NCBI RefSeq assembly: GCF_964204645.1 | Contig: NC_134032.1 | Location: 8,606,275 to 8,670,274 of the forward strand | Direction: 5' to 3' | From: Tubulanus polymorphus | Lineage: Eukaryota; Animalia; Nemertea | DNA: 64,000 nucleotides | Part shown: positions 5,223 through 59,531 of the stretch, in pieces | How positions within the stretch are numbered: position 1 is the first letter of the stretch | Layout of the letters: every line of letters starts with the position of its first letter | Program-made: the position numbers and the translations under genes | Notes under the pieces: model-generated | Seen by the model: only the letters and a program-made list of their open reading frames with translations | What the model was told of the DNA's origin: nothing | Database searches by the model: none

Positions 5223-8200
5223 TGCGCATCCCGCCGTCGATCAACTCGGTGACGCCGAGTTCGCTGATCTCGTCGAGCGAACGCGCGACGTTGACGTGCA
5301 AGGCCAGCGGTTCCCCGAAACCAAAGTAAGTACCGCCCCCTCAACCCCCAGTTTTTCGTAAATTGTAGTTTCCAGTGCGTATCCCGCCGTCGATCGTGTC
5401 GAACCTACAATCGGCGTTGTAAGCCAGCTCCGAAAAAGCTGTGTTCAAGTGCAACGCCATCGTCGCCCGCCCGCCACCGCCGCAAGGTAGCGTTTCTTCG
5501 TAACGGGTTCCTATTTTGTTTTGTATATATGTATATAATTCTGTTCATGTTTTGTAAATTTTTATATTCCATATTTTGTATTCAATCTTGCCTCCACGTA
5601 CCATTCTTATGGTTGGAGTGAAATAAATATCTTATCTTATCTTCCGCTTAAGAAGACCTCGCAAGCGCTCGCACACGTACACGCACACGCACACACTACA
5701 CACGCGCACACAACACACGCCCGCACTTATGCGACTGAAAAATATCTTGGGAATTTCATTACAAAGTTCTGAGGAAGAGATTTTCACGATGAAACTTTGT
5801 GTATCCGTGAACATTTCGGATCGGAAAAGGTTTTTCCGCTGGAGGGTTATGAATTTGATTATTGATAAGTCTGCCCCTCTTGGGAGGTCATGAGAACCCA
5901 GTTCTCTGAGAGGTCCATCATTAAGATCTCAATTAGTCCAACTCCCTGAGAGACCCACCATCCATCCAGACTGAACCCTTTGAGAAAGGACAGGAGTCAG
6001 CCTCCCAGTATGTTTGGAAGTGTTGAGTTCCTCCAGCTGAGGGTCCCGAACTCCCCTACCCTGCCCTCCCGCTAGTAGAAAATACATTGAAAATATAGAT
6101 AAACTTATATAGCTTCGTTAATGCCTTAACGATACTTAAACCCTGTGTTGGTTTAGGTCGATAGTTGAACCAAGTTGCTCATAGTTGCCCGCACGGTCGT
6201 CTTCTTTCTTTTAGGATCCGCTGGATGATGAGTTCCGGTAACAGCGAGTTCTCTCCGGTCACTCACATCCCAGGATCCTACGAATTCCCGATAAAACCGG
6301 ATGGAACGCGCGATCACACGCAGTTGAAGGCGCGACCGAGTCGCAACAACGAGTTGGCCGCAAAGACCCCGCCGGAGAACGATAAATACGCGTGCTACGC
6401 CGAGAACGATTACGGAAAAACGGCGTCGAACAACGTGGTCGTCAATGAGAAATGTAAGTTCATGGCCGTCCTCTGCCAACACCCATCCCCCCACTTTATT
6501 TTGACTAGTGAAAACGTTAGTACAGTTACCCCCTCTTCCTCTCTCCCCGCTCTTCCCCTCCCTATTTTACTCACAGTTGGTGGTTTATTAATAATGAAAG
6601 TTTATAATTAAACTCATGAAATTTCTCTAATCGCGGACAGTTATGGATTTCTATCACGCAAAACATAATTCAAACTCCGTTTCTTTTCAACGATGTTCAT
6701 TAATTTCCCGGCGTTAAGACGCGATGATTAAAATTGGCAACGGATACGGGTAGCGTTACATTGTCATCGCGTAATAGGTGATTTACGATCCATTCGCTGT
6801 GGTATTAGGCGCATTTATCATGCTTAAAACGGCAATTTTAATTTTAATCCCCTGCTCTATTTCCACCCCCATGTTTTGTCATGATTTGACCTGCAGCACA
6901 AGTCCCGCTACATGCCTTATGTGCGGATTCTTTAGGCTCAAGTCGTCATTCAAAACTTGAAATTAGACCGGTTCTTAGATTTGAACCAATCTTCGAACTT
7001 AAGCCGCAGCAACCGTACTACCAATAGGCCCTGGATTATTATGGGTTTTTTTTATAGAAAATATCGATGAAGCCGGTCCTTGTCAATTTCTGGAATGTGG
7101 AAAAATTTACAAACGAATTATTAATGTAAAATCTCGTGTTCTCCTGCAGACACCGGTGACTTCAGCCCGGAGAATTTGAAGGTGAAACCGACGTTGCAGG
7201 TACAGGAAGGCTTGACCACCGAATTGAAATGCAACCCTCCGGACTCGTTCCCGAAGCGAGCCATCATCTCGTGGCTGATCATCAAAGGATACGGAAAGGT
7301 CGACGCCAGCACCGTACGCGCGATCACCACCGATACGAGGGTTATGATCGGTCCAAACGGTAAGAGTTCGATCTGAAAAAAGAAATATGTACGTTTATAT
7401 CCCATTATAACTGACTACTTAATACCCCTAAAGTGCTGGAGATTTTTAAAGATTTCATCCCAGTTTGTCACTGCCTCATGACATTTACACCGAGGTACAG
7501 CATATTGTTAGTTATTGATATTTCGGTATGTTTTTCTGCTGTCTTTCAAATTACTATTGGCATCAATACACTGCGATAAGGTGTACTAGCAAAGTTCATC
7601 AATTTATACACCGCATTGCGGTGTAGATGCACTGAAAGGGTTTTCTTTTGAAGAATGGATTTACTTAATTTTCCATGATATCGTGATGGGGGGATTAATC
7701 TAGGCGGACATTATGTTTAAGTGTTCTAAAATGATTTGATCGTACATAGGTAACCTGTTTTTCTCGCAAATTTTACCATCCGACGCGACCAAACCGGACT
7801 CGGATGAGACATACGTCTGTCAGTACAATAACGCCGCACAGGGTACTATCAAACAGGGCAGTCCGATTTCCATCAAAGTGAAACCAAGTAAGTCAGATCA
7901 CGTCAAATTTGAAGATAGAAAATGTTCTATTCTTTTTCTTGCCGTATCCATTTTGAACAACAAAATTTTGTTCTAAATACACAAATCTATTTTGACAAAA
8001 AGTCTAGATTTATTACGAGTTAGTCGTTTGTTTTCAAGCTAGAAATATTGAAATGTTCATTATTCTAGACTAGGGATCAATCGACGTGAGTTGAAGTTGA
8101 TTTTATGGACAAATTCAGATCAGACATTTCCAAAATTTGTGCTTGAAAATTGCGGTTTTTATTTAGCATTTTGTTTCAAGACGTCCAAACTTTTCGATTG

Positions 8201-11200
8201 CAGATCCCAACATGCCAAACAAGCCTCCGGCGTTGATGGCCAATTCGCCGCGGCTTGTAAGCGCATTAGAACGCGATCAGATCGACCTGTATTGTATTTC
8301 AAGCGCCAAGTAAGTGCTTAAAACGATTCGCTTTAATAGTCCGGTCATTCAAGTCGAAATTAGTTCATTTCCGATTTCGCTATTCCATTAACTACTACGT
8401 TCCATTCGAAATGAAGTCACCTTTTCACTGTAGTACATCGACTAGCCTAACACACCGGGGCTAGAAAGTGAATTTCATATCTTTTATGAGGCTCGTTTCG
8501 CAATATATTCGTGCTCGCGAGTTCATAATATTTGAAGTCGAGACCCAGTTTCGAAAATTTGAAAACTGGAAGTGAACTAATTTTGGCCGACTGTTCGGTC
8601 ATCGTGTCGGTGGGATAGTATTTGTGTACCTGCTGATTGTGTAAATATTTTTGCGTATATTTTATTTTTTCAGGCCGGTCGCTACCGTTTCGTGGCGTCG
8701 CCTCGACGGCAAGCCGATGCCGTCGAATCATTCGTATTCGAACGGCAACGTTCACTTGTATTTGAAAAACGTCGCACCGAGTTACACCGGCGAGTACGAG
8801 TGTACGGTGTCGAACTGGATGGGCAGTAAAACGTCCAGAACCCGCGTCGCAATCATAAGTAAGTTTTTATAGTAAAATGGGGTGGTCATGAAAAGTCAGG
8901 GAAATTTCTTTTCTTCAAATATTGTCTCGGTGGAATAGTCGGGGAATTTGTAAAAAAAGCTGAAAATCAGGGGCGGGCGCAGGAAAACCCTGTTAGTGCT
9001 AACCGTGGTTAGTGCACTGTGATTAGGCATAAATGGGAAAATAAGAGTGGCCACCCTAGAAAGCCAAAATCGCAATTTGAACAATGTTAATTTTTTGACT
9101 AAATTGTGATTGCTCGGCGAATATCCAGTTCCGTCGTAACATTCAGGAGTCACTCTCTAGAAACTATCAACATGATGCAATGCGGGGCAATCCCATTTTA
9201 TAGAGGCTGTCTCCGAAATGATTTTTGAGCCATTAGGGTGAATCCATTCGATGATTTTCATAACAATGTGTTCGGAAACATCCCTTTCTAGTTTCAACCT
9301 CAGATAAATGAGCGTGATTTATAAAAGAAAGGTGAACGTACGTATTCTCCTGAAATCGTTCATTTCTCTGCGATTTTACTTTCAGCTTTACCGAAGTTCA
9401 TCAAGAAACCGGTCGATTCGACGTACGTTATCGGCGGCACGGCTAAATTCGAATGTCAGGCAACCGGTATCCCGACCCCGACTACTGAATGGCTCGAAAA
9501 TCTCGTTCCAGTACCCCGTAAGTGAATGAAAATTTTTCAATGAGCTTATGGAAGTGGGGGGCCGTAACTTCAAATCTTAAACACGACTGGAAAATTTGGA
9601 GAGTAGCTTTTTACTCGTTTCGTTGGTATCGGTGATTCCCATTGGTCAGTTTGCAGACGTATGAACCAATCATGTCATGAAATGGCGTCTACTTATTGCT
9701 TGCCCTCCAATAAAAAAAATCATCCAAGAATCAAGGTAATACTTCTCTAAAGTCAAAAGATATGTGGTTTAGTTAGTAACTTAGGCTGAACGAAAGTGGT
9801 ACCTTGTTTCTCCGCAGTGGCCGGGTCATTTCTATGGACTTTCGCTTAAGCAAAGTCCATTGTATTATTGCTTATGAGACTTTTTTCTTTTGGTACAAAG
9901 TAACATTCGAACGAGAAAATATTGCACAAGAAAACTTTAATCTTTCAATGATTTTTTTATTCAGCGAAAAGTGATAAAAAACTGACGGTAACCGCGAACA
10001 CCTACGAATTACGTAACCTGATCCGTGGCGGGGAAGGCAGCGTGAACACTCCCGATATGAGAGTCGTCCAGTGTCGTGCTTCAAATATTCATGGTAGCAT
10101 CATAGCGAACGGATTTATAAACGTCGTTCGTAAGTATCAGTAAAATGATTTGTATGCTTATGATCCAGAGTATTTCAGGGAAATTATGTGAAACGACTCG
10201 AGTGACGGCCTTCTTATTCATCAAAAGTACGATGAGTTATTAACCCTTTCAGTGCTGATTAATAAAAACCCTCCCTGGAGTGCCATGCTGGTCAAATATG
10301 ACCCCTCCAATAAACCGTTCATAGATTTAAGAACTGGCCAGAACGTAGCTTGTACGTTTTCATTCAACGAATTGGGGTCATATAAGGAACACTGGACATT
10401 GAAGAATGCACCTTTTCAGAAAATTAAGTTTCTCTGGAAGTTTTTAGGTACTCAAAACTAATAATTAAGCAGCCTGGGGGTTCATATTTGACCCATCCCA
10501 AAAACATGTCAGTGTGAAAATATATCCAAAACTGATATTGATTTGTCATTAGGGACCAAGAAAACATAAATGTGCGGCTTGCCCTACTGCCAGAAATATG
10601 TTTGCGCATCCCAGGGCTATAGTGCTGGAGACAATTTGAAAATTCATAAAAAATTCCACCCTAGTGTGTTGAATAATGGGAATCATCTTTCAATAGAGAT
10701 AAAAACTAATCACTATTTACAGCTATACATCGCAGTGCGGTGTACTTGCAAAATCCATCTCCGATTTATACACCGCACTGCTGTGTAGACGCACTGAAAG
10801 GGTTAATGATGACCTCATTCTCCATAAGATTTCGATGATGAAGTTACTAACAATGACCTTCTCGTTCTCGACATCTTCGACGATTCAACCAATTTATGAT
10901 AAGTTACTTATAACGACTTCTTATTCTCGATAAATTCAGCAATAAATGCGGATAAATTTCGAACAGTTGCTAACCATAAGCTTCTCGTTCGCGATGAAAA
11001 CGATACCGTTGGAAATTGTCTTAAAGTTTTCTTGTTGTCTCCGCAGAGCCGCTCGAGATGCGCGAGCCGAAAGCGAGTAACAGCAAGAACGCGTCGGTGA
11101 TGACGTTCAAATTCAAAGATGCCGTCATCCTGCCGTGCAAAACGCAATCGGATCCGGCGACGATTCCGCAAATAGAATGGCTGTTCAACGACGGCATGAT

Positions 11201-14200
11201 CAAATACGTCGAGAACCAAATCTGGCAGGACAACTCGGACAACTCGCTGCATATCAACTCGTGGAAGTACAACAAAGAGGAAGACCTACGCGGCGACTAC
11301 ATGTGCATCGCTCGGACTATAACACCCGTACAGGTAGTACGCGGTACCTATACGCTCGCGTTCGAAGGCGTGGCAGGTATGTGTTGTTGTGCATGCATGT
11401 GTTCTGTTAACCTTTCAAGCAGCGAGCAACCAGAGCTGCCGACTATTCCTGATTTTCAGTATTTGTTTCGATTTTATAACGAGAAATACTGATTCGATTA
11501 GTTTGATGCGTGAAGGAATATTACAGATGTTACTGAAGGTCTTAGTGTTAATAACTGAGTGATTAATTTTCTTTCATATTTTAATGAAATGTTACTCGAT
11601 TTGTTACTGACAGCGCTTTTCAGGGGTTGCCCGCCCTGCAATTGCCACAGTCAACTAAGAAGTCCTCATTAGACGCTCTAAACCGGTCGGTTAATCATTT
11701 AACATTATCTATTTTTTCAGCGGTCGTCGCAACTGGTGGCACGAGTTTCTGGTGGGTGGCGATCGTCATCGCTCTCATTCTCCTGTTGCTCATCATTTTC
11801 CTCATCATTTGTCTGATCCGTCGTAACCGCGGAGAAACGTATCTCGGTAAGTACAGTGAACACCGCTACAATTTTAAACTTTCAATTTTCAGCCACCCTC
11901 TGATTAGTAGTTTCCTAATACCAATCTGTACCGTACCAAATTTTGGACCGTAAAAAATGTATGTATATTCTTGGCCTTATTCGAGTACAAAATGATTCTT
12001 CGAAAAAGATAAAATACAATATAAGACTTTGAACTCAATTCCCTTGCCAAACAAGCTCCAATTTTCGAATTAAACCAGTTTGCCCATGGGGGCAACTCAT
12101 TAAAATATGTATGCGACTATATCCAGGAAGTACAAACATGGAGATCGGAGTGACTATTTATCATCTATTCTCCTTCCGCCTCCAATTATTGTGAAATTTC
12201 CTCAAAAAATATTTTTAAAAAAACCCAGATTTCATACAGAATAACCAGAAAATTTAGGGATGAAATCCTCTGTTGAATATTACACGATAATACACGACAT
12301 TGGCAAACCTTAGTTCGCTCTTAGTTAAACGGGAATCAGATAAAACAAGGAAAATCCAGGGAAAACTCGGGGAATTTGACAGATTTGGCACACAAAAAAA
12401 ACAGGATAACTCTTTGAATTTCGATAATGGTATTGATCGCTCGTTTCAATGACAATACTTGAGTTATAAAGAATGAATGAATATTGTAACATATTTAAAT
12501 CATGAAATTTCTGGGATTCCTTTGGTAGAATTTTGTTTTGTAACCTCGAAAAATAAGGGGCATCTCGGGGAATTTTTAAACTGATCCCCCTGTCCGAGTA
12601 TTTGTAGATATTAAAATGTTTCCGTTCGCGGTTTTTTTGCAGTCGACGAGAACGAACGAAAACAAGGAAACGACCCGGAAAAAGAAATGAAAGACGCCGG
12701 TTTCCATGACTACGTACGACCGTAAGTAGCCGATCTACTCTTTGATTATAGACCGAAATAACGTTTGAAAGATTTTGTATTCTTTGAATATTCTTCCTTC
12801 TTCCTCTGTGCTTTCTCTTTCTTTTCATTTCCATTCCTTCTCTCCTCCCCCTCTCCTTTCAACAATCCTCTTCTCTCTGCTCTCCCTCTCTCCTACTCTT
12901 TCCTTTGTCCATTCCTCTGTTCCCCATCTTCTTGCTGCCTCCTCCATGTGCTCTCCCTCTCATTTCGTTCCTTCTATATCTGCTCTCTTTTCCGCCCTTT
13001 TTTCCTCTACTGCCACTTGGCTCTCATCTGTTCTCTATATTCCTCTATCTTCATCATCTCTCCTCTCACCCTCTCACTCCCTCTCCTGCCTCTCCTCTCA
13101 TCTTTGTTCTCTCCACTCTAACCCATCTCTCTGACTATCATAGCTCCCGCATTTTCCGAGACGAGCTAGCGACGTCTTACGTTTAGTTGCCGCAGTAACG
13201 CGGGCATTGTTGCTAGCGCGCATGGCAAAAACGAACGAAAAATCGATTGCACGAATTTTTTACGAAATATCGATTCATGTTTTTAAATTGGCATAATTTT
13301 TGTAGTCGGGTAAACAAACGCAAGTCCGTTCGAACGTACGCCCCTTTTTAGAAAGTGCCCTTCATGATTTTGATAGTTCTTATGTAACATGTTCAGAGCT
13401 CGGCACCACTTGAGATGTTCAGTGTAGGCCACGGCATCTTACCGGCGATTCAGCTGGCAGTCCGTTATTTAGCCTATAATGTTTACATAAACACATGTGG
13501 CTGACACTAGGCTCACACAGTTACACAGTTGATGAATTGAAATAACTTTTTTCATATTTCTTTGAAAACATTTTCATCATAGTATTCTTTTAAATTACAT
13601 TTCACTGATTCTAGAGATATTGAGATATTGACTGATTCTAGAGATATTTTAAAAATGAAAATTACTCCAGTAATTACAGATTTATACGAAAAAAATCATT
13701 TTCAAATTCATCAGTCATTTAACGTCGGCGAAACAACTACATGCATTGTTCAATGACGGAGGGACCCCCTTGGTCCTCATGCGCATATATTACGTTGAGG
13801 ATATAGATACAAAAGCGGGATAACACACAAGACGAGTGAAGTTAGCAAACATTTTAAATTGAACTATTAAACATCCGGAGTTACTTACAGGCCCGTACCC
13901 GCGGGGGGGGGGATGCGTTAGGTGCGCCACCCACACACCCACAAAATCTCAAGATCCTCTATTTTTTGTCAAAGAAAATTTCATAGACTTGTTTTCACAT
14001 CTCTCTTCTCTCGCACTTGCTCACATTCATAACTATGATACAGATGTAGACACTGTTATAAAAAAATTTGCCACTCCATAAAAGAAGGATGAGACTCCAG
14101 TGTATGATGTTGGATTCTAATAAAAACTTATCCTGAAAATGTTTCGATCGAGGATTAATTACATTTTTAGCCCTCTTGGGACTTTAGTCCCAGCGGGCTA

Positions 14201-23128: not shown

Positions 23129-23222
23129 CATCATAGTTCTTCGCTACTGTTAATGTGTTCAGCACCGAGATGGCGATCACTGCGACTGACACCAACGTTA
23201 AAAACCTCACGATCGCCGACAT
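23129..23222 (-). other. Orphan signal-peptide leader exon
   Basis: MSAIVRFLTLVSVAVIAISVLNTLTVAKNYD followed by a phase-1 GT donor; paralogous to the leaders at 39652 and 59531; no Ig exon follows it. Confidence 0.75.
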
Positions 23223-23919
23223 ATTTTCTGCTTGTTCGGATTTCGAGTTTTAACATCCGATCGACACGAAATCTGCAAACGATAAACGGATGATTATTTG
23301 GAAAACGGAAGTCAATAGAATTTTTATGGTGATCCGCCAACTTCCGCAAATCAATGAATCATAGCAATTTTTCTCAATTCTATAAAATTCCATGAAATAT
23401 ACAAAAAAACTGCGGCCTACAACTGTGTGCTGGCCAAAAGAGCCCACAGATCACACTACTACCAATCTGACCCTATTTATCAACTGTTTTCTACAACCTT
23501 CCGATTATCTAGTGTGTTTCTCCCTGGGTTATGAAATGTATACCATCATGGACTAATGGTCGTAGATTTTTTTAATCAAACTGAACGAATCATGAATAAA
23601 GTAACGGTAATTTAAGAATTAACTTAATCATACCTACGCTTTGAATGTTTTTTGATGATCGTTGTTAGCTTGTATACGTTAACGAATGGTTCACACGTTC
23701 CTAGGTAAGCGGTGTTTCGCCCGATCGTCCTCAGAAGGAATTACTGCGGTTCGTCTGTTCGCCCGTTTGTCCGAAGATTCAGTTAATTTAGGAAGCTTTA
23801 AAGACGCAAGACAATAGCCGTCTTGATATTCAGTCTATACGTGTATCTACCCTAGACACGTCTACAGAAAAAAACCGGCCCGATCATGTTCAAGATGGCT
23901 GTGCGACGGGGATTCTTGC

Positions 23920-26640: not shown

Positions 26641-28021
26641 GGGATTTCATTCCACCTGGGTTTCTTATACTTTTGTATCGAAGTGGACCACACATTATCA
26701 AGTTTCACTTCTCTATCCTCGGAATCAATTAATTAACATGCGGTAAAGTTGAGGAAAATTTGATCTCAAATTGCAGTTACGCGGAACTATACAAGCAAAA
26801 CGTTGTAGACCCTCACTTGCGACATGTGGAATCCTTCATTGCCACGGCCCTAGTTGATGTCCTTTCCTGTACTTGAGTGACACCTGGTGGATACTCGTGG
26901 AATTCTTTGCCAACAGTTGGCTACTCATTTGCCAAAATTACGTATTCTAGTTGTTCTACTGCAAACTAGCGTAAATCTGTTGTTGTTAGGATTCAGGCTA
27001 GAATACTGCTCTAAAGAAACGATCGTAAGATGAACCGATAAATAGACAACACGATGGCATTTCGATACTTGAATATTACATGATCAATCGAATTAATCAA
27101 ACTTTATTTCATATATTTATTCACTTGGCTATGAATGAGCTATGGTACTCGAGCTAGTATTTGTTGTATTAAAATCTTACGGAAAAATTTAGCATTAAGA
27201 GTCTTAGTTTAAGATTTGTTCATAGATTAGATATTACGGCGTCTAGATAAATTGACAACACAATGATGATAATCAGGTGAGATAATATTGTTTATCTTTT
27301 TTAAATTGCCAGGATATTTTCTGTGTAGACCTTCTGATGTACCTTCCATCATAGAACTAGAATTGAACGGAACGCCGACTCCATGACGTCATTTTATGAA
27401 ATTGCGATTTTCAAAATTTCAGCACCCTCACCGTTAGCCATAAACAATAGATATTCGGTGATAATTCGATATATTTTTCGCGCGAGCAATGATGATACAA
27501 TTTAACCAAATGTTGAACAGTAAAGTTTGGACTAGTTAAAAATAGGTGCCTCTATAGATGAATATCGTTGACAATGAATTATAAAATATGAGCAGAATGA
27601 TATTCACGATTGATAATTTATTTGAGTTATATGTATATCGACTGTTGAATTGAATTGACCGGCGACCAGTCTAGTCCCGCGATATTGATGACGCAGAGCA
27701 CATCCACTCAAAACTTTATTGCTAACGGCGTGGGGCTGTAAAAAACACAAGATTCCATGATAATCCGGAAAGATAAGAATTTTTTAAGTTTTAGCGGGGC
27801 GTGGTAAATTCCTTTAAGGAGTCGGCATTCACATTCGCTTATATTTCTATGCTTCCATTCGTCATTATTGATTGGTGAAGTTAACCGTATTGTTTACTTC
27901 AGGAATGCTGGAAAAAAAATAAAACAGACACTTTTCATTCATCTTTTTTGAAACTATCGACGAAGAAAGCCGCCGGTAGTTACTCTCGGTGTTTAAAGGG
28001 TTAACCAACGTAGACACATAC

Positions 28022-37100: not shown

Positions 37101-38641
37101 TTTAGAAAACATGGCCACGTAGATAGATCCTATCAGATCATCGTGAAGTTAAGCCTTCAGACATTTTCAGAAAATATGACTGCCAGTGACATCATTAAAT
37201 TTACTAGGCATTTTCGAAAAAGATGACTGCCTTAGAAATTTCCATATGACACCATAAAAATACACTTTGACACTGCCCCGGAAAAATGGTGACATTAATT
37301 CCAAATTCATGGAACAATCTATTCATCCTGATATTAAATTTTTTAAGTTAGGTGTGAAAAATTACATATTTTCGAAATCCAATATGATACCGTATTTTAT
37401 TTACACTGCTCTGATACGCAGTTATGGGTTTATAAATGAATGGTGTTACATGTATCATCTATCATTATGGTACCAACGTACAAATAGTAGACTCCGCTCT
37501 TCTCGGTACCGGTCGACAAGATAACCGGCTGCGTCGGTGAAATTCCATTCTGATCCCTGTCGTAAAATTCCTAGACCTACCGGTCTCTATGTCGGTATTC
37601 GGTTCCAAATAGAACCAAGTTAGGCGGAGTCTACTGTATATTGTTTCTGCAGATCGAACTATTTTTGAACTCTTACCGTTTGGACCGATCATAACCCTCG
37701 AATCGGTGGTGATTGCGCGTACGGTGCTGGCCTCGACCCTTCCGTACCCTTTGATGATCAGCCACGAGATGATGGCTCGCTTCGGGAACGAGTCCGGAGG
37801 GTTGCATTTCAATTCGGTGGTCAAGCCTTCCTGTACCTGCAACGTCGGTTTCACCTTCAAATTCTCCCAGCTAAAGTCACCGGTATCTGAAGGAGAGCAC
37901 AAAGTGGTCGTTTAAAATTTTCTGCAGCCCAGACCCAGAAATCGACATGGTTTATCAAAATGTTAATCAAGAAAAGAACAGGAAAAATTAAATGATCCAG
38001 TGATCAGTTGTCGTACGGCTGGGGCTGCTTAAGTTCGGAGATTCTTTTAAATCTAAGAGAACGTAGGGCTTAGTTCGCAAAAGGACTATTTATTCGATAG
38101 CCACCAACCGAAGAGTGAAAGGATAGGGAGAGATGAGAGGCGGAGGAAGTGAGTGTTAACATTTCATCATCGATCTGAATGGCGATTGTAGTTGTAAACT
38201 TACATTTCTCATTGACGACCACGTTGTTCGACGCCGCTTTCCCGAAATCGTTCTCGGCGTAGCACGCGTATTTAATGTTCTCCGGCGGGGTCTTCGCCGA
38301 CAACTCGTTGTTTCGACTCGGTCGCACCTTCAACTGCGTGGAATCGCGAGTTCCGTCCGGTTTAATCGGAAATTCATAGAATCCTGGGATGTGAGTGACC
38401 GGAGAGAACTCGCTGTTACCGGAACTCATCATCCAGCGGATCCTAAAAGAAAGAACACGACCGTGCGGCCAACTATTGGAAACTCGGTTCAACTGTCGAC
38501 CCGGCTGGCCAAAGGGTACCGGTACTTACATCGGTTTCGGAATGCCGCTGGCTTTGCACGTCAACTTGGCGCGTTCGCTCGACGACACCAGGAAACTTTT
38601 TGACACCGAATCGATCGACGGTGGAATTAGGGGGGGGCATC
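34173..38641 (-). CDS. Ig1-Ig5 ectodomain module B (intact if the cryptic acceptor at 38642-38644 is used)
   Basis: Exons 38641-38530, 38442-38204, 37886-37677, 37074-36943, 36660-36555, 36392-36208, 35549-35418, 34882-34715, 34502-34173; no stops or frameshifts seen. Confidence 0.72.
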
Positions 38642-39558: not shown

Positions 39559-39652
39559 CACCATAGTTCTTCGCTACCGTTAATGTGTTCTGCGCCAAGA
39601 AGGTGATCACTGCGACTGACACCAACGTTAAAAACCTCACTATCGGCGACAT
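39559..39652 (-). CDS. Signal-peptide leader exon for modules B/A
   Basis: MSPIVRFLTLVSVAVITFLAQNTLTVAKNYG followed by phase-1 donor GTAGGT, matching the phase-1 start of the Ig1 exon. Confidence 0.8.
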
Positions 39653-44720: not shown

Positions 44721-47700
44721 CTGTCTTGTCTTCGAACGCGAGCGTATAGGTGCCGCGTACTTCCTGTACGGGTGTCATAGTCCTAGCGACGCACGTGTAG
44801 TCACCGCGTAGGTCTTCTTCCGTGATGTATTTCCACGAGTTGATATGCAGCGAGTTGTCGGCGTTGTCCTGCCAGATTTGATTCTCGATGTAGTCGATCG
44901 GGCTACCGTTGTACAACCATTCTATCTGCGGAATCGTCGCCGGATCAGACTCCGTTTTGCACGGAAGGATGACGGTATCTGTGAATTCGAACGTCATCAC
45001 CGAAGCGTTCTTGCCGTTCTTGCTGTCGCTCGGTTTCGGTTCTCGCATGATGAGCGGCACTGCGGAGACAATAACGAAAAAGCCACGTTCAACTTTTACC
45101 AAATAATTCTAACGATAATGAGATGATTATCATTAGTATTTTTCATAGGTTTGAACATCATAATCATCACCGGTCGACATCGAAAATAAACTGACTCATC
45201 GAAGTAACCAAAATGAGATTAAGTTGCCATCAATAGGCGCTAATCATATATTGATTCTAATGATACTTACGGACAACATTTATATATCCGTTAGCTATGA
45301 TGCTACCATGAATATTTGAAGCCCGACACTGGACGACTCTCATATCTGGAGTGTTCACGCTGCCATCCCCGCCGCGGATCAGGTGACGCAATATGTAAGT
45401 ATTCGCGGTTACCGTCAATCTGTTATCATTCTTCGTATCTGAACAAAAATCATTGGAATTTGTTGATTCAAATATGTTTTCTCGAACTGTCTTTGAATTT
45501 GACTCAAATCAGCTCATTTTCGATTAGCTGACTTGAATAACAATAGGGGCATTTTGTCCAGTGACTTGACTGAAGTTTTCTGGAATTATTGACACTATAA
45601 AAATATCCGTTGAACTAGATTAACTGACACACAGTCTTGACCCTTGAGTCAAAATCTCTTCATGTCAAATCTTTCAAATAGGCAGTCAAAATTTAAACCT
45701 ACTAGATTTTTAAACTCTAGAGACGAAATTACTAACTAGATTCGCTTGAGTCAAATTCTGGTCGTCCCATAGACCCACTGGTGCCGGTAGTCCATTTTCG
45801 AGAGTTAAGTTAGAAGTGATGTAAACGCCATTCTGCTTTTATAAGATATAAATCGACAAATTGGAATTGCCAACACATCAATGAGTATAAAACGTCTCCT
45901 TTCAAGTTTTCGAGCCGTGTTTAAGTTTTGACCCCACACTAAAACCCCATTTAACGATTGTCTCTGCACTTACGGTCAACTGGGACGAGATTTTCGAGCC
46001 ATTCAGTAGTCGGGGTCGGGTTACCGGTCGCTTCGCATTCGAATCTAGCCGTGTCACCGATGACGTAAGTAGAATCGACCGGTTTCTTGGTGAACTTCGG
46101 TAAAGCTTAAATCAAAATTGTCGGCAATTAACAAGGATTTCATCGAGTTTTCCGGAAAATAGTATTATCTTTTTCTCTTTTACATGAAACTTTTAGAGAT
46201 GGGAACGATTTCTGAAACCGTAATTATCGGTTTTGATTCGCAGCAAAACAAAAAATAAAAGCTTCTATCCGTGATGGAATTCTTCAATCTTAAAGTGGGA
46301 TTTTCCTCATTATCCATTTGATTGGTAGATTTGGTCTGATTACTTCTCATTTCGTGTCCCTCAACAAACCCACTACACCTGCCGGGAGCGAAACATTCTT
46401 TGCCAGAACCAAGTGCACATGGAACCAAGGAGAGGACAACTTTGAATATCGTGACTTCTCAGAGCTCCAACAGGAAAATAAACAGCTCTTGAAATGGCAA
46501 TTTAGATATCCTTGGAGTCATCCCTAGATAATGTTATGGCTTCAGAAACCATGATTGGGATATTGTTGGAGCCACCCACTTAAGAGAGGTTTAAAAGGCA
46601 TGATTGTGAGAGTGATGACTGAATTTTTGATGATTTGGGCGTCTTTGTAGCCATCCTAATTTCCTTCAAAACTTCACATCAAATTCAAACTGTCATTGTG
46701 AAATATCATTAAGCTTTGAATCATACATTTTTCATGTTGATTTAGATTATAAAACAAAACTTACTGATGATTTCGACGCGGGTTCTGGACGTTTTACTGC
46801 CCATCCAGTTCGACACCGTACACTCGTACTCGCCGGCGTAACTCGGGGCAAAATTTATCAAATACAAGTGAACGTTGCCGTTCGAATACGAACGATTCGT
46901 AGGCATCGTCTTGCCGTCGAGGCGACGCCACGAAACGGTAGCGACCGGCCTGTAAAAAAATATGCAAGAATATATACACACCTTACCATCGCGCATCCTC
47001 GCTTTCCAGGGTTTGATTACCATCCGCTGACGTTCACGCCAAAAACCCTGGCCGCAAACCAGGTATCTTGGCCATTACGCTGGCCAAGATACCTTTGGCG
47101 GACAGGTTGAAACACCGGACTACTAAACTGAATAGGTTTAAGCATCTTACTTGGTGCTTGAAATACAATACAAATCGATCACATCGCGTTCTAACGCGCT
47201 TACAACCGGCGGTGGATTCGCAATCAACGCTGGAGGCTTGTTCGGCACGTTGGGATCTGCAATCGAAAAATATTGATATTTCGAAAGAAATCATTGAGCA
47301 AAGTATAAGCAAATTGGGGGGTAGTCAACAAATGACAAACAACGTTAACTTTTCGCAATTTTGAATTTCGGTCGGAACTTCCAATATTTCGAGGAAAAGA
47401 AACAAACTTTGAATTCGGGAAACATCGGAATCAAATACTCTATTCGAGATATTATCATATATTTAGAACAGAATATCTGTCAATATTGGTATGGAATAAA
47501 CGAAATGAAATTTTCCATTTTGACTTACTTGGTTTCACTTTGATGGAAATCGGACTGCCCTGTTTGATAACACCCTGAGCGGCGTTATTGTACTGACAGA
47601 CGTACGACTCATCCGGTTTGGTCGCGTCGGATGGTAAAATGTGCGAGAAAAACAGGTTACCTACGAACGAAGAGTTTACGCACGCTTTTAGAAAACATGG

Positions 47701-50700
47701 TCACGTAGATAGATCCTATCAGATCATCGTGAAGTTAAGCCTTCAGACATTTTCAGAAAATATGACTGCCAGTGACATCATTAAATTTACTAGGCATTTT
47801 CGAAAAAGATGACTGCCTTAGACATTTCCATATGACACCATAAAAATACACTTTGACACTGCCCCGGAAAAATGGCTGACATTAATTCCAAATTCATGGA
47901 ACAATCTATACATCCTGATATTGAATTTTTTAAGTTAGCTGTGAAAAATTACATATTTTCGAAATCCAATATGATACCGTATTTTATTTACACTGCTCTG
48001 ATACGCAGTTATGGGTTTATAAATGAATGGTGTTACATGTATCATCTATCATTATGGTACCAACGTACAAATAGTAGACTCCGCTCTTCTCGGTACCGGT
48101 CGACGAGATAACCGGCTGCGTCGGTGAAATTCCATTCTGATCCCTGTCGTAAAATTCCTAGACCTACCGGTCTCTATGTCGGTATTCGGTTCCAAGTAGA
48201 ACCAAGTTAGGTGGAGTCTACTGTATATTGTTTCTGCAGATCGAACTATTTTTGAACTCTTACCGTTTGGACCGATCATAACCCTCGTTAGGTGGTGATC
48301 GCGCGTACGGTGCTGTCGTCGACCGTTCCGTACCCTTTGATGATCAACCACGAAGTGATGGCTCGCTTCGGGAACGAGTCCGGAGGGTTGCATTTCAACT
48401 CGGTGAACGAGCCTTCCTGCAAGAGCAACATCGGTTTCACCTTCTTATTCTCCGGGCTGAAGTCACCGGTATCTTAAGGAGAGCACAAAGTTGTCGTTTA
48501 AAATTTTCTGCAGCCCAGACCCAGAAATCGACATGGTTTATCAAAATGTTTATCAAGAAAAGAACAGGAAAATGATCCAGTGATCAGTTGTCGTACGGCC
48601 GGGGCTGCTTAAGTTCGGAGATTCTTTTAAATCTAAGAGAGCGTAGGGCTTAGTTCGCAAAAGGACTATTTATTCGATAGCCACCAACCGAAGAGTGAAA
48701 GGATAGGGAGAGATGAGAGGCGGAGGAAGTGAGTGTTTGACATTTTATCATCGATCTGAATGGCGATTGTAGTTGTAAACTTACATTTCTCATCGACGAC
48801 CACGTTGTTTGACGCCGCTTTCCCGAAATCGTTCTCGGCGTAGCACGCGTATTTAACGTTCTCCGGTGGATTCTTCGCGGCCAACTCGTTGTTGCGACTC
48901 GGTCGCACCTTCAACTGCGTGCGATCGCGCGTTCCGTCCGGTTTAATCGGGAACTCGTAGACTCCAGGGATGTGAGTGATCTGAGTGAAATTGCCGTCAC
49001 CGTAACTGACCATCCATCGGATCCTAAACGAAAAAGATAATGCGAATACGATGACCAGCTAATTCTAAGCACATAGAGGTCACCCTCAAGGCGGCATAAA
49101 TGGGAGAGAGCCTCATTGACCATAAAGAGATGAACTTATCCTTTTGCAAGTATGAAATATATTTCGATGACTCATGACTTCTCTAGGACATTTCAGACTC
49201 GTGACCTCTTCTAGCATGTGGATTCATTTTAGTTATGCCATCATCAGATACCAGGTGGCACATACGTAGTATTGGAAGACGCAAGATGTTTTGCGGGTCA
49301 ATTTTGGTCCTGGTTCATTGGATTTAACATGAATTTCCTCTTTGATGATGATTTCTTATTCAATACATTTATGATTATGATGTTATTGTTTGTTCTTTGG
49401 AGTCGAAGATGACAATAACTTCATTTCCAGGTCATGTGGGTTCTCGGGTGAATGATGAGGCCAAGTTTGGCTCTTAAGCAAGTTGAAAATTGTGTGCTAT
49501 ACAGAAGCTGGGTCGGGTGTAGCCTTTCCGAGAGTACGTTTCTGTATTGGCTCATCAGATCACCTGTTTTCGGTGCTCGTTGGCCCTTGTTGGATCGTGC
49601 TTCTGAAGCTAGCTCTGTCAAGGCAGGGCTATCCCAGCTTTTGGCATTGATAGCAAACGTAACATTTTTCGGCTGTCCTTGTAGCGATCCGTTTGCCCAC
49701 CTGGTCATTGGACATTTTGCCAGAGGCAAGTTTACCAAATAGGAACTGTTTTGAGATGCGGACCATCTGACTTGTGCAATCTGAATCTAGGTATAGGTAC
49801 TTTGGAGGCCTGCTGTGATGTGGAAATCAGTATTGAGGATTCTATCTTGCCATCTTATTTGAAGGATCCTGCGAAGACATCTCATGTGGAAGTGGTTTAG
49901 CTGATTTGCAGGTCTAATATCGACAGTCCAGGTCTCGCAGGCCTAGCCGTGATGCGAGGACGATGGCACGGTATACTGAGTAAGTTCTTGGTCATGGTTG
50001 TTATCCTTCTGCTGTCTCCCAGACGCATGTTTAAGTCTACATAAAGCAGAGCTGGCAGCGTGTTCACTAGGTAGACTTATAAGTGGCCAACTCCAACCAG
50101 GTTTATCCCATTTAATCTGAATTGCAGGCTTGGTGTAAAGTTTCTCGGATGCGGGTTGACAAAGTAATTTGTCTTTGGGATGGACATATAGCGAGACCGA
50201 ACTTATCGCAGGCTGAAGAAAGGCGAGCCATGTCACGCTGCAAACTGCGTTAAGTGATGGTATACAATGCGGTATCGTCGACGAAGAAGATATTCCAGAG
50301 TTTCTTTTAACTCTATATATGATTCGTAAGTTGAACAGCCCTAAATCAGTTTTTGAATTGACCTTTATACCCTAGAGAGTCGCAAAATGCACAACAGAGC
50401 ATTGTAGTGGCCAGAACACCCCCTCTACGTCCTACATTTTCCGTAAGCTGGTTTAACCTCTATATCTTGTACAGGATGTTGTTGAAATAGCTATTTTATA
50501 TATCAAAGATGACCACCAGTCAGCCATCTTGAAAGGTTTTTTCGGTGATAAAGCTATTTCATCAGGGCTTTCCTGGAAGGTAGAAACTCTCAAATCAATA
50601 GGATTCTTCCCAACATAATGTCATAAATGTCAAAGGAATCTTAGGTGGGTCGCGCTACCCGCGGCGTTGCACTATGACAAATATTTTCTGGAGCTGTTCA

Positions 50701-50892
50701 AAATCGCTGATTTTTTAATGAGGCCTTGAAAACACATAACTTATAGGTAAGATACCGTCAACGTAGTAGTAACAGGTGGTGGGCTACCTACCTGGGTTTT
50801 GGGGAACCGCTTGCTTTGCACCTTAACGTGGCACGATACCTCGACGATCAGACAATTCCCTGACACCAAATCGATTGATGGTGGGATTCGCA
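44721..50892 (-). pseudogene. Ig1-Ig5 module C (frameshifted)
   Basis: Exons 50892-50792 (101 nt, -2), 49023-48785, 48472-48264 (209 nt, -1), 47660-47529, 47256-47151, 46949-46765, 46105-45974, 45438-45271, 45059-44721. Confidence 0.85.
49370..50460 (-). mobile_element. Decayed RTE-like LINE fragment in the first intron of module C
   Basis: The - strand reads CETWTV...LNHFHMRCLRRILQIRWQDRI, typical of the region downstream of RT in RTE elements; multiple frame breaks. Confidence 0.75.
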
Positions 50893-51088: not shown

Positions 51089-54000
51089 CGATCACGCTTT
51101 CGGACGCGAGCCTATAGGTGCCGCGTACTTCCTGTACGGGTGTTGTAGTCCTGGCGACGCACGTGTAGTCACCGCGTAGGTCTTCTTCCGTGTTGTATGT
51201 CCACGAGTTGATATGCAGCGAGTTGTCGGACTTGTCCTGCCAGATTTGATTCTCGATGTAGATGATCGGGCTACCGTTGTACAACCATTCGATTCGCGGA
51301 ATCCTCGCCGGATCAGATTGCGTTTTGCACGGCAGGATGACGGTATCTGTGAATTTGAACGTCATCATCGACGCCCCGTTACTCGGTTTCGGTTCTTGCA
51401 TCTCGAGAGGCACTTTGAATACAACGTATGAACTTGAAAAAATTTATTCATAAAAAGAGGGTCATACTTTATCATAGGTTTTAATATAATCAGAGGTTCG
51501 ACTTCAGTAACAGATCATAATCTTACTGAATAACGTTCTGGATTGAAGACATTGAAAATTAGAAGGTCGTCATTATAGAAACTAATCATAATCTTTGAAA
51601 TCATCGATAATGATAAGATTGCCACAAGTAGCCGCCTTAAATCATTAACAATGATTTTACTAATACTTACAAACAACATTAATATATCCGTTCGCTATGA
51701 TGCTACCATGAATATTTGAAGCCCGACATTGGACAACTCTCATATCTGAAGCGCCTTCCCCGCCACGGGTCAGGTTACGCAATTCGTAAGTGTTCGCGGT
51801 TACCGTCAATTTGTTATCATTATTCGTCGCTGAATAAAATGCAATGTTTCTATAAATTTGCTGTCTTGGACTCTTTGGAGTTATTTCGATTTTATATGAA
51901 ATTACCTCGATCATTTCGATTAGCTGACTCATAAATCATTTACTAACCGAAATGGCATTTTGCCAAATTAATCTGTTAAACTAGATCCAGGACCCATTTT
52001 CAAATTTTTTGAACATATTTCTAATCTTTAATCTCTCGAGTTGGAAACGTTAGGTACCGTTTGTCTATGTCGGACAGACAGTAAGACGTTATGTAAACGC
52101 GATTCTGATTTTATAAGAATAGACACAATATCCGTAAATCGACAAATTAGAACTCCCGATACTAATCAGTAAACATTTAAAAGTTCCCCAGCCGTAATTA
52201 AGGTTTGAGGTTACGACCTCCATTTCTATTCAAAATGTTTTCTTTACTTACGGGGTACTGGGACGAGATTTTCGAGCCATTCAGTAGTCGGAGTCGGGTT
52301 ACCGGTCGCCACGCATTCGAATTTAGCCGTGTCGCCGATAACGTACGTCGAATCGACCGGTTTCTTGATGAACTTCGGTAAAGCTTAAAATGAAATGTTG
52401 GAAATTAACAAAGATTTCCTCGCGATTTCACGAATATAAACTATTTTTTTCTGTTTTACAAAATATTTCTGAAACCGTCATTATCGGTTTCGATTCGCAG
52501 CAAAAAAAAATCCTAATGGCGAATATTTCTTTACACACCAGGCTCGCCATTTTGTGACGGGCTATCACATGTTCTTGACATATAAATAAATTAACTTATA
52601 CAATCCTCAGTTTAAGTCGGTACCGACAACCATATGGCCAAAAGACTTCTCTGCCATCAGATCTCAGCAGAATCTATGAAAAATGTATTCTAATTGCTAA
52701 ACAATCAAGCCCAGTCCTATCTCTTCTTACAATATTGTCAAAGAAAGTATATAAGAAAATATGATACGAAATGAGAGAGCATGACTAATTAGTTTGACAG
52801 GGATTAACCTATTGTCACGTGAAGAGAGAAAAATTTGAAATCTTACATAATGCAAAATGAGACTCTTTATATTTTGATAATACAGCAGTTACGAAGAGCA
52901 AGACTTCAGAATGATTATTGCACTATACAAAGTAGGGTTACAGCAGTTTACTAACTAAAACTAACAGATTTGTCACGAAAGTGCCGCACTTGAAATATAC
53001 AACCACTACGGGATTCGAACAGACCAACAAAAGACCAACCAGGTGTGAAAAAAATCGCTTCTAAATGCCGAATGAAAATATCTTAGGAAGTGTTGAATGA
53101 AACCCTCGATGCGGGTATTTTCGCAGCCATCCTAATTTCATTCAAAACTTCACGGTATATTCAGCTTGTCATTTGAAATATTTTCGCTGTGAATCATTAA
53201 TTCTTTATTTTCATTTACTTATAAAAAAAACTTACTCATGATTTCGATGCGGGATCTGGACGTTTTACTGCCCATCGAGTTCGACACCGTGCACTCGTAC
53301 TCGCCGGCGTAACTCGGGGCGACATTTTTCAATAGCAAGTGATCGAAACCATTCGAATACGAATGAGTTGGAGGCATACGCTTGCCGTCGACTCGACGCC
53401 AAGAAACTATAGCAATTGGGCTGGAAAATATGAAAAATGTACACAACTCGTTTGCGCAAAATAAACCGCTATCGCATAATGACTTTGGCTTCGGTCGATA
53501 TTAGTTCATTATCAATTCTCAACTTTGAGCTGGAAAATAAGAATCGAATTGGTCCGACAAATGCTTTCAGACGAGCCTCGAAAAGATATATAGTGCGTAA
53601 AGATTCACTCTTCTACCCCCGGTATTTGGCGTCGTGTAGTATTCACTGACAATTGATCTACCAGAAGCCGAGGAAAATATGATTCGATTTTGTGCAGAAC
53701 CGAGTAACTAGTAACGAAACGTGGTAGATCCTCATTTGCCACAAGAGTGGAATCCTTTATTGCTACGGTAGTTGATGTCCTAATTGACACCTGGTGGATC
53801 TTCACTGACCTCAAATGGATTCCTGTTTTCTATTGCCACGGTAGTTGATGTCCTGGTACCGGAATGATTAAACCTTGCAGTTTTGACTCGTCTCATGGAG
53901 TCAGACATGAGAAATAAACTAATTTTGACTATTCCGAACTGCTTAACCGAAATAAACTTACTTTGCACTAGAAATACAATATAAATCGATCGTTTCAGTT

Positions 54001-56371
54001 TCTAAGGCGCGTACAACAGCTGGCGAATTGGCAATCAATGTCGGAGGTCTGTGCGGCACATTGGCGTCTAGAATTGGAAAAATATCGATATTTCGAACAA
54101 AATCATTGAACAAAATCATTCTAAAAGATTGGTAGCAAATATTTCCCCAGATATTTGTAATGAACAAAATTCCATAGAACAGAGAGAAAGTAAACGGAAA
54201 CTATTATTCATGTTTTTCAAATTCGACGTATTTTGACTTACTCGGTCTAACTTTGATGGTAACCGGACTGCCCTGTTTGATAACCCCAAGAGCGGAGTGA
54301 AGGTATTGACAGACGTACGTCTCGTCCGAGTTCGGTTTGGTCGCGTCGGTCGGTAAAACTTGTGAAAAATACAGGTTACCTATGAATAGAATGTTTAAAA
54401 GCACGGTTACAAAACATGGTCACCACGACAGATCCCTATGGTATCATCAAATTACCCCCATTTCCAGAAGATTCTGGCAGCTTTCGTAAATCCCCCATCA
54501 AATTGACCATAGAGGCCCTTTCGGGAAAGATGGCTAACTTCTATATGACCTCTATATGACCTTATCAAAATACCCCTGTAGACACTTCCAAAAAGATGAC
54601 TGCCACCATCAAATCCCCTTGATATCATCAAGCTAGCATAAAACCAGAACGTTAGCTTCAAGATACGCGAAGCAGAATGTTGCCATAGCGCTACAAATAG
54701 GATAGGTGACAAATTACAGTTATATGTATGAAATCCGTTGGTCCTGGGAGACATATTGATGATTAAAATAGGGAATTCCCTGGATTGTTTATGTTCGAAC
54801 CAATCATGGTAACGTTCCCTTTCATATTCGGCCCGGATGTATACTGGCACACCTGTACTGGGATACTCGTCCTTTCTTAAGGTGTGATTATTTCAATAAT
54901 TCGTTTCTGTGTGTGGGGCTAAAACCGCTTCAATGCGTAGCTAATATGGCCTAGCTGCAGATTTCCCCTGGACTTATGCGCTTATATATGAACTTAACGC
55001 TTAAAAATCTTGTTTTTACTATGAAAGATTTCGGACTAGTATCTGTACTCTGTTACCCCTAATGTTTTGCCTCAGATGATCAAGTTTCATCGGAAAATCT
55101 ACTTTTTAATTCTCGCAGCTGCGTCAGATATTGACGAATTTACGTGTTGTGTGAAAACTTACCTTTTTACAAAGATTTATTCGTAATTCATTATGAGGCC
55201 GTAAGCTTGTAAACTGCTCTGATACGCAGTGAAGAGTGGCATACGAATAATGATCTCATCTATCATGATATTAACGTATATCATTTCTGCGGATTGAACT
55301 CTTACCGGATGGACCGATCATAACCCTCGAATCGGGGATGATCGCACGTACGGTCCTGGCGTCAAACCTTCCGTAGCCTTTGATAATCAACGACGAGATG
55401 ATGGCTCGCTTCGGGAACGAGTCCGGAGGGTTACATTTCAATTCGACCATCTCTCTTTCCTGTACCTGCAACGTCGGTTTCACCTTTAAATTCTCCGGGC
55501 TAAAATCACCTATATCTGAAGCAGATCATAAAGCGGTCGTTTGAAATTTCCTGCAGCCCACAATTTTCATCGAGAAAAATCTACAAACGAACATCCAGGA
55601 CCTACGTAGTTGTAGTACGACCATGGTTGCTTTAGTGTGAAAATGGGTTCAAATCTAATGGATGATCGAGCTAAGGAGGTCTTATTCTAAGTCTTGATTG
55701 TCGAGTTAAGCCAAAAAAGATTCACTTCGAGCGTACAGGTGAACAACACCGTTTCTACCAACTATCACACGGTTATAAGTAATATTGGGGAGTGGAAGGG
55801 GAGATGGGAGAGAGAGGAGAATGGGAGGGGTCATTTCTAATTGATCTAAATACATCTAAAAGATGATAAACGGGATAGGGCACCTGGTAGGGAGGACGGT
55901 CATAAACTTACATTTCTCATTGACGACCACGGTTTTCGACACCGTTTTTCCGTAATCGTTCTCGGCGTAGCACGCGTATCTAACGTTCACCAGTGGATTT
56001 TTGGCGGCCAACTCGTTGTTGCGAGTTGGTCGCACCCTCAACTGCGTGTGATCGCGCGTTCCATCCGGTTTAATCGGGAGTAGGGATGTAAGTGACCGGA
56101 GTGAACTCGCTGTTACCGGAACTCATCATCCAGCGGATCCTAAAAGAAAGAAGACGACCGTGCGGGCAACTATTCGAAGTTCGGTTCAACCAACAAGCAA
56201 TTATCTAAATATCATAGATAATTGCTCGTAGGTTCAACTGTCGACCTGACCAGCCAAAGGGTACTTACGTCGGTTTCGGAATGCCGCTGGCTTTGCACGT
56301 CAACGTGGCGTATTCGTACGACGACACCAGGGAACTTTTCGACACCGAATCGATCGACGGTGGAATCCGTA
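51089..56371 (-). pseudogene. Ig1-Ig5 module D (most diverged; frameshifted)
   Basis: Exons 56371-56269, 56139-55912 (228 nt, -11), 55515-55306, 54379-54242, 54067-53962, 53420-53236, 52383-52252, 51829-51671, 51412-51089; the last donor is GA instead of GT. Confidence 0.85.
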
Positions 56372-59300: not shown

Positions 59301-59440
59301 AATAGATAACATGGTAAATCCCTGTTTTAAGATTTTAAAAGAATCTAGAGTAAGATTTGATGTGGCTTCTATAGAACTGGGTCCGGTCGTTGGTTTGCCG
59401 CGAGCTAGATCGAGAAGACACGGGAGACTTTAAAACCTAC

Positions 59441-59531
59441 CAGAGTCCTTCGGTACTGTTAATGTGCTCTGCGCTGAGATGGCGATCACTGCAACTGACA
59501 CCAACGTTAGAAACCTCACAATCGGCGACAT
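59441..59531 (-). other. Signal-peptide leader exon for modules D/C
   Basis: MSPIVRFLTLVSVAVIAISAQSTLTVPKDS followed by phase-1 donor GTAGGT. Confidence 0.8.

Follow-up and report, generated by a model that had tools for sequence, protein, structure and literature searches.

We analysed a window of 64,000 nucleotides (C8:8606275-8670274) from the genome of the ribbon worm Tubulanus polymorphus, in which a membrane-anchored receptor gene of the L1/neuroglian family, here called P, lies on the + strand and four copies of its nine-exon immunoglobulin (Ig) block, modules A to D, lie on the − strand. Modules B and A are spliced together into one gene with its own leader and its own terminal exon, and the product, B-A, should be a secreted protein of 10 Ig domains that consists of two five-domain units. 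Modules D and C are an older copy of the same leader-module-module layout, now decayed. We consider it likely that the region as a whole constitutes one germline locus with several genes of the L1/neuroglian family, built by nested segmental duplications. It represents an ordinary expansion of a gene family with sequence swapping among the copies, not a cassette-based diversity system. We document here the anatomy, splicing, expression and copy number of the locus, its lesions and its mosaic patches.

Comparison of the window with itself revealed nested repeats. The stretch 23275-32326 recurs at 39902-49033 with 97% identity, and a unit of ~6.1 kb stands in tandem inside this larger repeat (27166-32861 and 32853-38925). 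A fourth − strand copy of the Ig block (51-56.4 kb) could be aligned in exons only. The + strand carries one nine-exon set (5223-11376), which matched each − strand copy in nine islands of 71-97% identity, the introns being unalignable. Modules A, B and C were 97-98% alike, introns included, in the case of C only from the middle of exon 2 on. Module D resembled the other copies in its exons only, at 71% in exon 5 (E5), otherwise at 83-88%, and at ~90% in some repeat arms. The intron phases of the block are 1 at entry, then 2, 1, 1, 1, 2, 1, 1 and 1, and 1 at exit; since phase 1 is found at both entry and exit, the block is phase-symmetric. A whole-genome search confined the paralogue family to ~110 kb of one chromosome. 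Additional copies of the leader exon were found within the locus and none elsewhere in the genome, and a whole-genome search with a vertebrate FN3 region gave no match in the locus.

A preliminary description of this DNA had read it as one anchored receptor that faces an inverted array of four identical, tail-less ectodomain cassettes. Four − strand copies are indeed present, leaders do stand before B and D as expected for two leader-module-module units (D-C and B-A), no module is followed by a transmembrane or FIGQY exon, and the locus is lineage-specific, as had been proposed. The copies are not identical, however, and the two units amount to one intact gene and one decayed gene. The claim of a single set of transmembrane and FIGQY-tail exons holds within the window, but a second receptor gene, P2, lies 46 kb upstream and an FN3-bearing L1 gene lies on another chromosome.

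The secreted gene B-A

On the − strand, the gene and its associated exon copy are laid out as follows.

39559..39652 (−): leader (signal-peptide) exon of B-A; ATG, hydrophobic core, phase-1 donor; residues 1-32 of the RefSeq protein P0021
34173..38641 (−): module B; all nine Ig exons intact, encodes the N-terminal half of the secreted product
32853..33573 (−): terminal-exon copy downstream of B; matches exactly where the terminal exon of A begins
28022..32506 (−): module A; all nine Ig exons intact, encodes the C-terminal half of the secreted product
27100..27907, lower limit approximate (−): terminal exon of B-A; AFLK, stop and ~0.8 kb of 3′ untranslated region (UTR), with AATAAA at 27121 and 27108

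Terminal coding exons (four residues, a stop and 3′ UTR) follow A, B and C and start at 27907, 33573 and 44606, respectively.

Four read runs were placed on 27300-33200. Two of them, X5 and X6, are 2014 runs of one sample and were judged to be RNA by their behaviour, as they showed no intron depth and had GT..AG joints on the − strand. In these runs, spliced joints were found for six of the eight internal introns of A. Five of the joints (E1/E2, E4/E5, E5/E6, E6/E7 and E8/E9) fell at the predicted boundaries, and the sixth (E7/E8) used an acceptor 3 nt upstream of the P-equivalent site; loose contig ends only were seen at E2/E3 and E3/E4. Exon 9 of A was joined to the terminal exon (28022 to 27907) across a 114-nt GT..AG intron at a depth of 115, with the A-type base at 28028, and a 927-nt RNA contig supports this terminal exon. 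Another joint 'goes back' from 28022 to 32506. It carries the B/C-type base at 28028, and its depth of 78 equals the depth of the contig with that base. The base on the exon 9 side thus identifies this joint as exon 9 of B spliced to exon 1 of A, which occurs in frame because the block starts and ends in phase 1. Taken together, the joints from B exon 9 to A exon 1 and from A exon 9 to the terminal exon define one mRNA that reads leader-B-A-stop. The terminal-exon copy of B is skipped in the observed RNA, as no B-type letters were present at 27689 or 27697 in the contigs.

Two other readings of these joints were considered and rejected. A circular RNA as the source of the joint that goes back was ruled out by the B/C-type base on its exon 9 side. 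Splicing of a module exon 9 into the downstream G-protein-coupled receptor (GPCR) gene was ruled out by the RNA, which shows the terminal exon at 27907 instead.

Exon 1 of B has lost its native acceptor through a 60-bp deletion. A substitute acceptor 9 nt upstream, predicted here, is used in RefSeq isoform X1, and the B-type E1/E2 junction was found in RNA contigs. This isoform (P0021, XP_074656305.1; 1110 residues) reads leader-B-A-AFLK. Its automated name, 'hemicentin-2-like', can now be corrected: the protein is an L1-ectodomain derivative. The leader is the only hydrophobic segment of P0021, so the protein should be secreted, and the C-terminus is too short for a glycosylphosphatidylinositol signal. 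RefSeq isoform X2 skips exon 1 of B, so that the signal peptide is lost. Modules A and B each keep 536 open codons and all splice sites. P, P2 and B-A are already in RefSeq under automated names, and we did not find them described in the literature.

A B-specific insertion of ~500 bp (33610-34128) lies between exon 9 of B and the terminal-exon copy of B. It stretches the intron before that copy from 114 to 599 nt and may favour splicing onward to exon 1 of A. Intron 6 of the modules contains a high-copy repeat (29467-29860), at which DNA depth was 4-5x that of the neighbours and hundreds of read ends were loose; this repeat is similar also to 15680-15784.

The anchored receptors P and P2

The exons of P within the window are listed below.

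5223-5325, 6215-6453, 7150-7359, 7750-7887, 8204-8309, 8674-8858, 9386-9517, 9965-10129 and 11047-11376 (+): P Ig exons E1-E9, encoding Ig1-Ig5
5373..5475 (+): dead alternative exon 1 (E1b) of P; 89% to E1b of P2 by tblastn, in-frame TAA, 3′ end diverged
11721..11846 (+): P transmembrane exon; AG/GT, phase 1, hydrophobic stretch followed by RRNRGETY
12636..12722, approximate limits (+): P cytoplasmic exon, located by tblastn of the RefSeq protein P0111
15950..16162 (+): last coding exon of P; FIGQY ankyrin-binding motif and stop, Pfam Bravo_FIGEY 1.5e-12, located by tblastn of P0111

All nine Ig exons of P have AG/GT boundaries and open frames, and they match its RefSeq protein (P0111, XP_074657069.1; 698 residues). 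The leader exon is found ~2.8 kb before the first letter of the window. The gap between the Ig5 exon and the transmembrane exon is 344 nt and holds no FN3 exon. The twin gene P2, beyond the window, is arranged head-to-tail with P on the + strand and is 79-96% identical to it, introns included. Its RefSeq protein is P0097 (714 residues), and both genes are named 'neural cell adhesion molecule L1-like'. Ig1 to Ig4 are each split across two exons in P and P2. P0111 and P0097 have five Ig domains, a transmembrane segment and FIGQY; the hydrophobic windows of P0097 are the leader and one near residue 597 only. In the related protein P0010, Bravo_FIGEY was matched at 2.9e-23.

In P2, ~42.1 kb upstream of the window, exon 1 (which encodes the first half of Ig1) exists in two alternative versions ~75 nt apart. 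They are used in different RefSeq isoforms, with E1b in isoforms X4 and X7, and P2 isoforms also contain optional mini-exons between leader and Ig1. On the − strand, ~25.3-25.6 kb before the window start, there is a fragment that corresponds to module exon 1 and half of exon 2, and a leader copy is found ~16.6 kb before the window start, also on the − strand; both are downstream of P2. The pair formed by an anchored gene and a facing, inverted module has therefore been duplicated as well, and most of the second array was deleted. The first intron of P contains a perfect 549-bp direct repeat (2849-3397 and 4508-5056, 1.1 kb apart), which points to a very recent duplication or else to a local fault of the assembly.

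Canonical L1/neuroglian proteins carry six Ig domains, followed by three to five FN3 domains and then the membrane segment. P and P2 are like the L1 family in their signal peptide, an Ig1-4 head (a horseshoe in the model of module B described below), one transmembrane helix, a juxtamembrane RNRG-type motif and a FIGQY tail. They differ from it in that there are five Ig domains instead of six and no FN3 domain, the transmembrane exon coming straight after Ig5. The FN3 family PF00041 was absent from the Pfam lists of P0097, P0024 and P0010. In the whole-genome search, the best FN3 match lay on another chromosome (C3), 4.4 kb from a third FIGQY exon, which indicates that the C3 gene is the canonical L1/neuroglian gene.

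The same short architecture was found in Lineus longissimus ('neuroglian-like', 634-703 residues, no FN3) and in one metatranscript. The short form is thus a nemertean L1 subfamily, and a truncation artefact could be ruled out by the same two occurrences. In the literature, we found no description of nemertean L1 genes. When a secreted paralogue was sought in Lineus with P0024, under a word filter and a length window, the search returned only the isoforms of one gene and a metatranscript relative, which argues weakly that such a paralogue is absent. A phylum-wide short form of L1 provides a test of which parts of L1 are needed for horseshoe adhesion and ankyrin coupling.

Among solved structures, the best relative of P2 was neurofascin (6e-41), collinear over Ig1-4. 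CHL1 was collinear with P2 over Ig1-5, and its transmembrane segment and tail were 37% identical. Exon 9 alone gave a weak neurofascin match among solved structures that does not specify the domain, and by BLAST it was collinear with Ig5 of CHL1. Module B is 83% identical to P2. Its AlphaFold2 model, built on a 16-row alignment, had a mean predicted local distance difference test (pLDDT) value of 82.8. In Foldseek, this model matched contactin-5 (TM-score 0.86), axonin-1 (0.84), neurofascin (0.83) and hemolin 1BIH (0.75), versus only 0.36 for the extended Ig1-4 of Robo1. The first four Ig domains are predicted to form the L1/contactin horseshoe. Horseshoes of the L1 family mediate both homophilic and heterophilic adhesion (PMC3406286). 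Prediction of a complex between Ig1-4 of P2 and Ig1-4 of module A scored 0.01, which gives no verdict and was not used as evidence either way.

Copy number, sequence exchange and history of the locus

The number of copies was assessed with X8, which are raw whole-genome shotgun reads from a different sample and study (independent 2026 reads). With 1934 Mb of reads over a 268-Mb genome, 7.2x per copy is expected. The depth on A at 95% likeness was ~23x, about three times the expected value, and this fits three real copies, A, B and C. In the stretch common to A and B only, the depth was ~12x. Reads on A were divided into 424 at a likeness of at least 99% and 1013 at 95-99%, and both forms of the junction at the 60-bp indel, A-type and B-type, were present in read runs X8 and X1. 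Two reference-private bases of module A (28585 and 32237) were found in none of the read sets X1, X5 and X8 and may be private alleles or consensus errors.

Divergence among A, B and C amounts to 1.7-3.0% of the aligned positions. Outside the exons, private sites number 50 in C, 15 in A and 22 in B, so that C is the outlier, which favours the order ((A,B),C). Private differences among the three were 2.5 times denser in exons than elsewhere (6.0% versus 2.4%; p 1.5e-9). At 23 of the 46 exon sites that are private to A or B, the base equals that of P, compared with ~3% expected, and that half of these changes equal P points to exon-limited germline gene conversion. The following patches were mapped.

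30852..30889 (−): patch in A exon 4; A equals P/P2 and is without the 6-bp deletion, the alternative state is common to B and C
37820..37844 (−): patch in B exon 3; cluster of eight sites at which B equals P/P2, A and C differ
36280..36344 (−): patch in B exon 6; B equals P, repeat arms 98% complementary, base 36280 shared by P and B only

Exon 4 of A was 97.4% identical to P, as against 88-91% for B and C. Base 36280 is private to P among the older copies, is shared by B alone and lies inside a P-like tract, which suggests a transfer from P into B; the direction of conversion was apparently from the anchored gene to the secreted gene. The differences between P and P2 were ordinary lineage-private changes, and no module-derived tracts were seen among them. 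Synonymous divergence (dS) between P and the modules ranged by exon from ~0.03 (exon 4) to ~0.46 (exon 1) per site (p 1.6e-4). This heterogeneity, together with the unalignable introns, argues for exon-limited homogenisation. Individuals vary at some module sites. Examples are the two bases that end A E1 ('AA'/'CT' variants) and, in E2, an insertion of 3 nt that was present in RNA and in a minority of DNA reads.

Ratios of non-synonymous to synonymous divergence (dN/dS) were obtained exon by exon, with split codons dropped and counts summed. For P versus A or B, dN/dS was 0.30, over a dS of 0.25. The module lineage is old (dS ~0.25-0.3 from P and D) yet has kept its 536 open codons, so the secreted form was presumably under selection until the block was recently doubled. 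The doubled B-A state is too young to be judged for selection.

The features of the decayed pair, the adjoining transporter gene and an isolated leader are as follows.

59441..59531 (−): D leader exon; ATG, hydrophobic signal, phase-1 donor
51089..56371 (−): module D; E2 lacks 11 bp, Ser replaces a conserved Trp in E3, and the E9 donor reads GA in place of GT
44721..50892 (−): module C; old E1 at 50892-50792, E2-E9 at 49023-44721, terminal-exon copy starting at 44606
61610-63190 (−): MATE-family transporter; single exon, 527 residues, Pfam MatE 1.7e-22
23129..23222 (−): orphan leader exon, no module downstream

In module C, E1 lacks 2 bp, the loss of 1 bp creates a TAA in E3, and a retroelement is inserted between exons 1 and 2 (~49.4-50.4 kb). 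In RefSeq, C is represented by a partial protein of 401 residues (P0023). In P0098 (LOC141910332), D is fused to the upstream MATE gene with the help of a frame workaround, and the model ends in frameshifted C exons. These workarounds agree with D-C being a decayed copy. The fusion is probably a read-through or a model artefact, and we relabel LOC141910332 as a MATE transporter fused to a pseudogene. Exon 1 and the 5′ part of exon 2 of C are old sequence, which indicates that C is an older module, most of which has been overwritten or replaced by duplicated sequence of the A region and the adjoining GPCR gene. The orphan leader is a relic of the repeat unit leader-modules-GPCR.

We propose the following history. 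The founder would have been a nemertean short L1 receptor with a signal peptide, five Ig domains, one transmembrane segment and a FIGQY tail, and with neither a sixth Ig domain nor FN3. Ectodomain exons on the − strand would then have become a separate, secreted type of gene with its own leader and a short terminal exon. In the intact copy, the nine-exon block would have doubled in tandem very recently (~2% divergence) to give a secreted 10-Ig protein with two horseshoes, and the D-C pair would be an earlier, decayed copy of the doubled layout. Gene conversion between the inverted copies would pass short tracts of exon size from one paralogue to another. Conversion limited to exons in this way keeps the exons of old copies more similar than their introns, and in young copies it makes the exons differ more than the introns do.

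For B-A, a close comparison is hemolin of Lepidoptera, a secreted horseshoe of four Ig domains that is related to neural adhesion molecules and has immune roles (PMC9163686). B-A is like it in being a secreted protein with a signal peptide and L1-type Ig domains only, with no transmembrane segment, anchor or tail, and in its derivation from the ectodomain of an adhesion receptor. It differs in having ten Ig domains, as two tandem five-domain units, instead of four in one horseshoe, and in its independent origin in another phylum; the sequence is also closer to neurofascin (6e-41) than to hemolin (1.7e-17). B-A would most likely be a soluble, bivalent protein of L1 type that works extracellularly on the short receptors or their partners, by binding or by competition, and a hemolin-like role is our second choice. 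We hold it to be rather unlikely that B-A is, more specifically, a soluble cross-linker or decoy of the adjacent short receptors, in which receptor-to-ligand conversion matches the binding faces and which arose as an independent nemertean counterpart of hemolin. If this were true, the alternative Ig1 half-exons of P2 and the allelic variation of the modules might add a modest polymorphic recognition code. The locus shows how an adhesion receptor can give rise to a secreted relative, through copying of ectodomain exons, new first and last exons and a phase-symmetric doubling. We see in it a second case, of independent origin, of the presumed route to insect hemolin, caught very young, with one copy working, one copy dead and gene conversion still connecting the receptor and its derivative.

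Donor arrays of avian Ig loci consist of promoter-less, unexpressed cassettes that donate one way into an expressed gene, and in Dscam-type arrays the repeated exon blocks of one gene are used in a mutually exclusive manner. The present locus is like both in its repeated Ig blocks near an expressed receptor and its short conversion tracts. The preliminary description had suggested that the locus may be a variable Ig recognition system for immunity, allorecognition or neuronal identity, its four tail-less cassettes being soluble variants, sequence donors for the diversification of the anchored receptor, or both. We find a variable system of this kind very improbable. The exchange that it supposed between the + gene and the − modules does exist, as seen in the private exon sites that equal P; the soluble derivative B-A is present as spliced RNA in X5/X6; individuals differ at some module sites; and P2 has two alternative first halves of Ig1. 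However, the four modules yield one intact gene, with C and D broken, so that one transcribed and spliced soluble derivative takes the place of four independent variants. The picture of bare cassettes did not survive either, as A, B and C each have a terminal coding exon and 3′ UTR. Unlike avian donors, B-A is spliced and expressed with its own leader, stop and UTR, and where the direction of the germline exchange can be read (the P-private base 36280 in the P-like tract of B), P was the donor and the secreted gene the recipient. P and P2, for their part, show no module-derived tracts. In contrast to Dscam, exon 9 of B is joined to exon 1 of A in the same RNA, and the anchored gene and the blocks are on opposite strands. 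We saw no somatic mechanism or signal sequences, and found nothing that would speak for somatic diversification or a large repertoire.

Ordinary family expansion also has to be set against the possibility that the − strand modules are non-functional duplicates in decay, of which B-A is the youngest still-open copy, transcribed incidentally. Two of the four modules are dead already, D is modelled as a read-through tail of MATE, and B has lost its native E1 acceptor and is represented by an isoform without signal peptide. The dN/dS of A versus B is 0.73, a value from 51 changes only that is indistinguishable from neutrality. Nevertheless, we regard incidental survival as unlikely, since 536 codons are open in both A and B, along with the splice sites, leader and terminal exon, in a lineage with a dS of ~0.25-0.3, dN/dS versus P is 0.30, and the RNA is correctly spliced at a notable k-mer depth. 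That the array is an artefact, with haplotypes or collapsed repeats mis-assembled as tandem copies, is hardly credible. The ~98% identity of A, B and C, the two bases of A found in no read set and the perfect 549-bp repeat near 2849 and 4508 could be taken as signs of it. They are outweighed by the shotgun depth (about three times the expected value on A and about two times where only A and B exist), the 424:1013 split of the reads, the presence of both junction types in X8 and X1, and the RNA in which a B-type E9 is joined to A E1. Besides the dN/dS between A and B, several points weigh against our own reading. Single-copy depth was computed from the assembly size, not measured on a control stretch. 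The run type of X5 and X6 is not on record, their RNA nature following from their behaviour; the Logan contigs are short, no single record spans leader, B, A and terminal exon, and the joint from leader to B E1 lies outside the stretch examined for RNA. The direction of conversion rests on few sites, and part of the pattern could be exchange between A and C. B has an extra Cys in Ig5 in addition to the lost acceptor, and the doubled form may be too young for selection. Finally, the extracellular function proposed for B-A is one that we infer.

Neighbouring genes and repeats

The GPCR copies and the other elements of the window are given below.

24733-25647 (−) and 41345-42295 (−): single-exon rhodopsin-type GPCR genes, Pfam 7tm_1 2.3e-15, co-duplicated with the Ig modules
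26156-26288 and 42856-42988 (−): Ig-leader-like segments before the GPCR genes; also ~10.4 kb before the window start (+)
18191-19543 (−): non-LTR (long terminal repeat) retrotransposon fragment, RVT_1 1.4e-14
49424-50371 (−): non-LTR retrotransposon fragment between exons 1 and 2 of C, no Pfam match
312-1350: tandem array of a 10-nt unit, ~100 copies, 99% identical

The two GPCR copies differ at the C-terminus, with open frames of 304 and 317 residues. Upstream of each copy lies approximately the first 130 nt of the Ig-gene leader region, that is, the 5′ UTR and the start of the signal peptide, and the ATG is mutated in both copies of this segment within the window. This arrangement suggests that the promoter and first exon of the Ig genes were duplicated and are used again by the GPCR genes. 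The tandem array near the start of the window gives rise to an artefactual repeat open reading frame of 309 residues.

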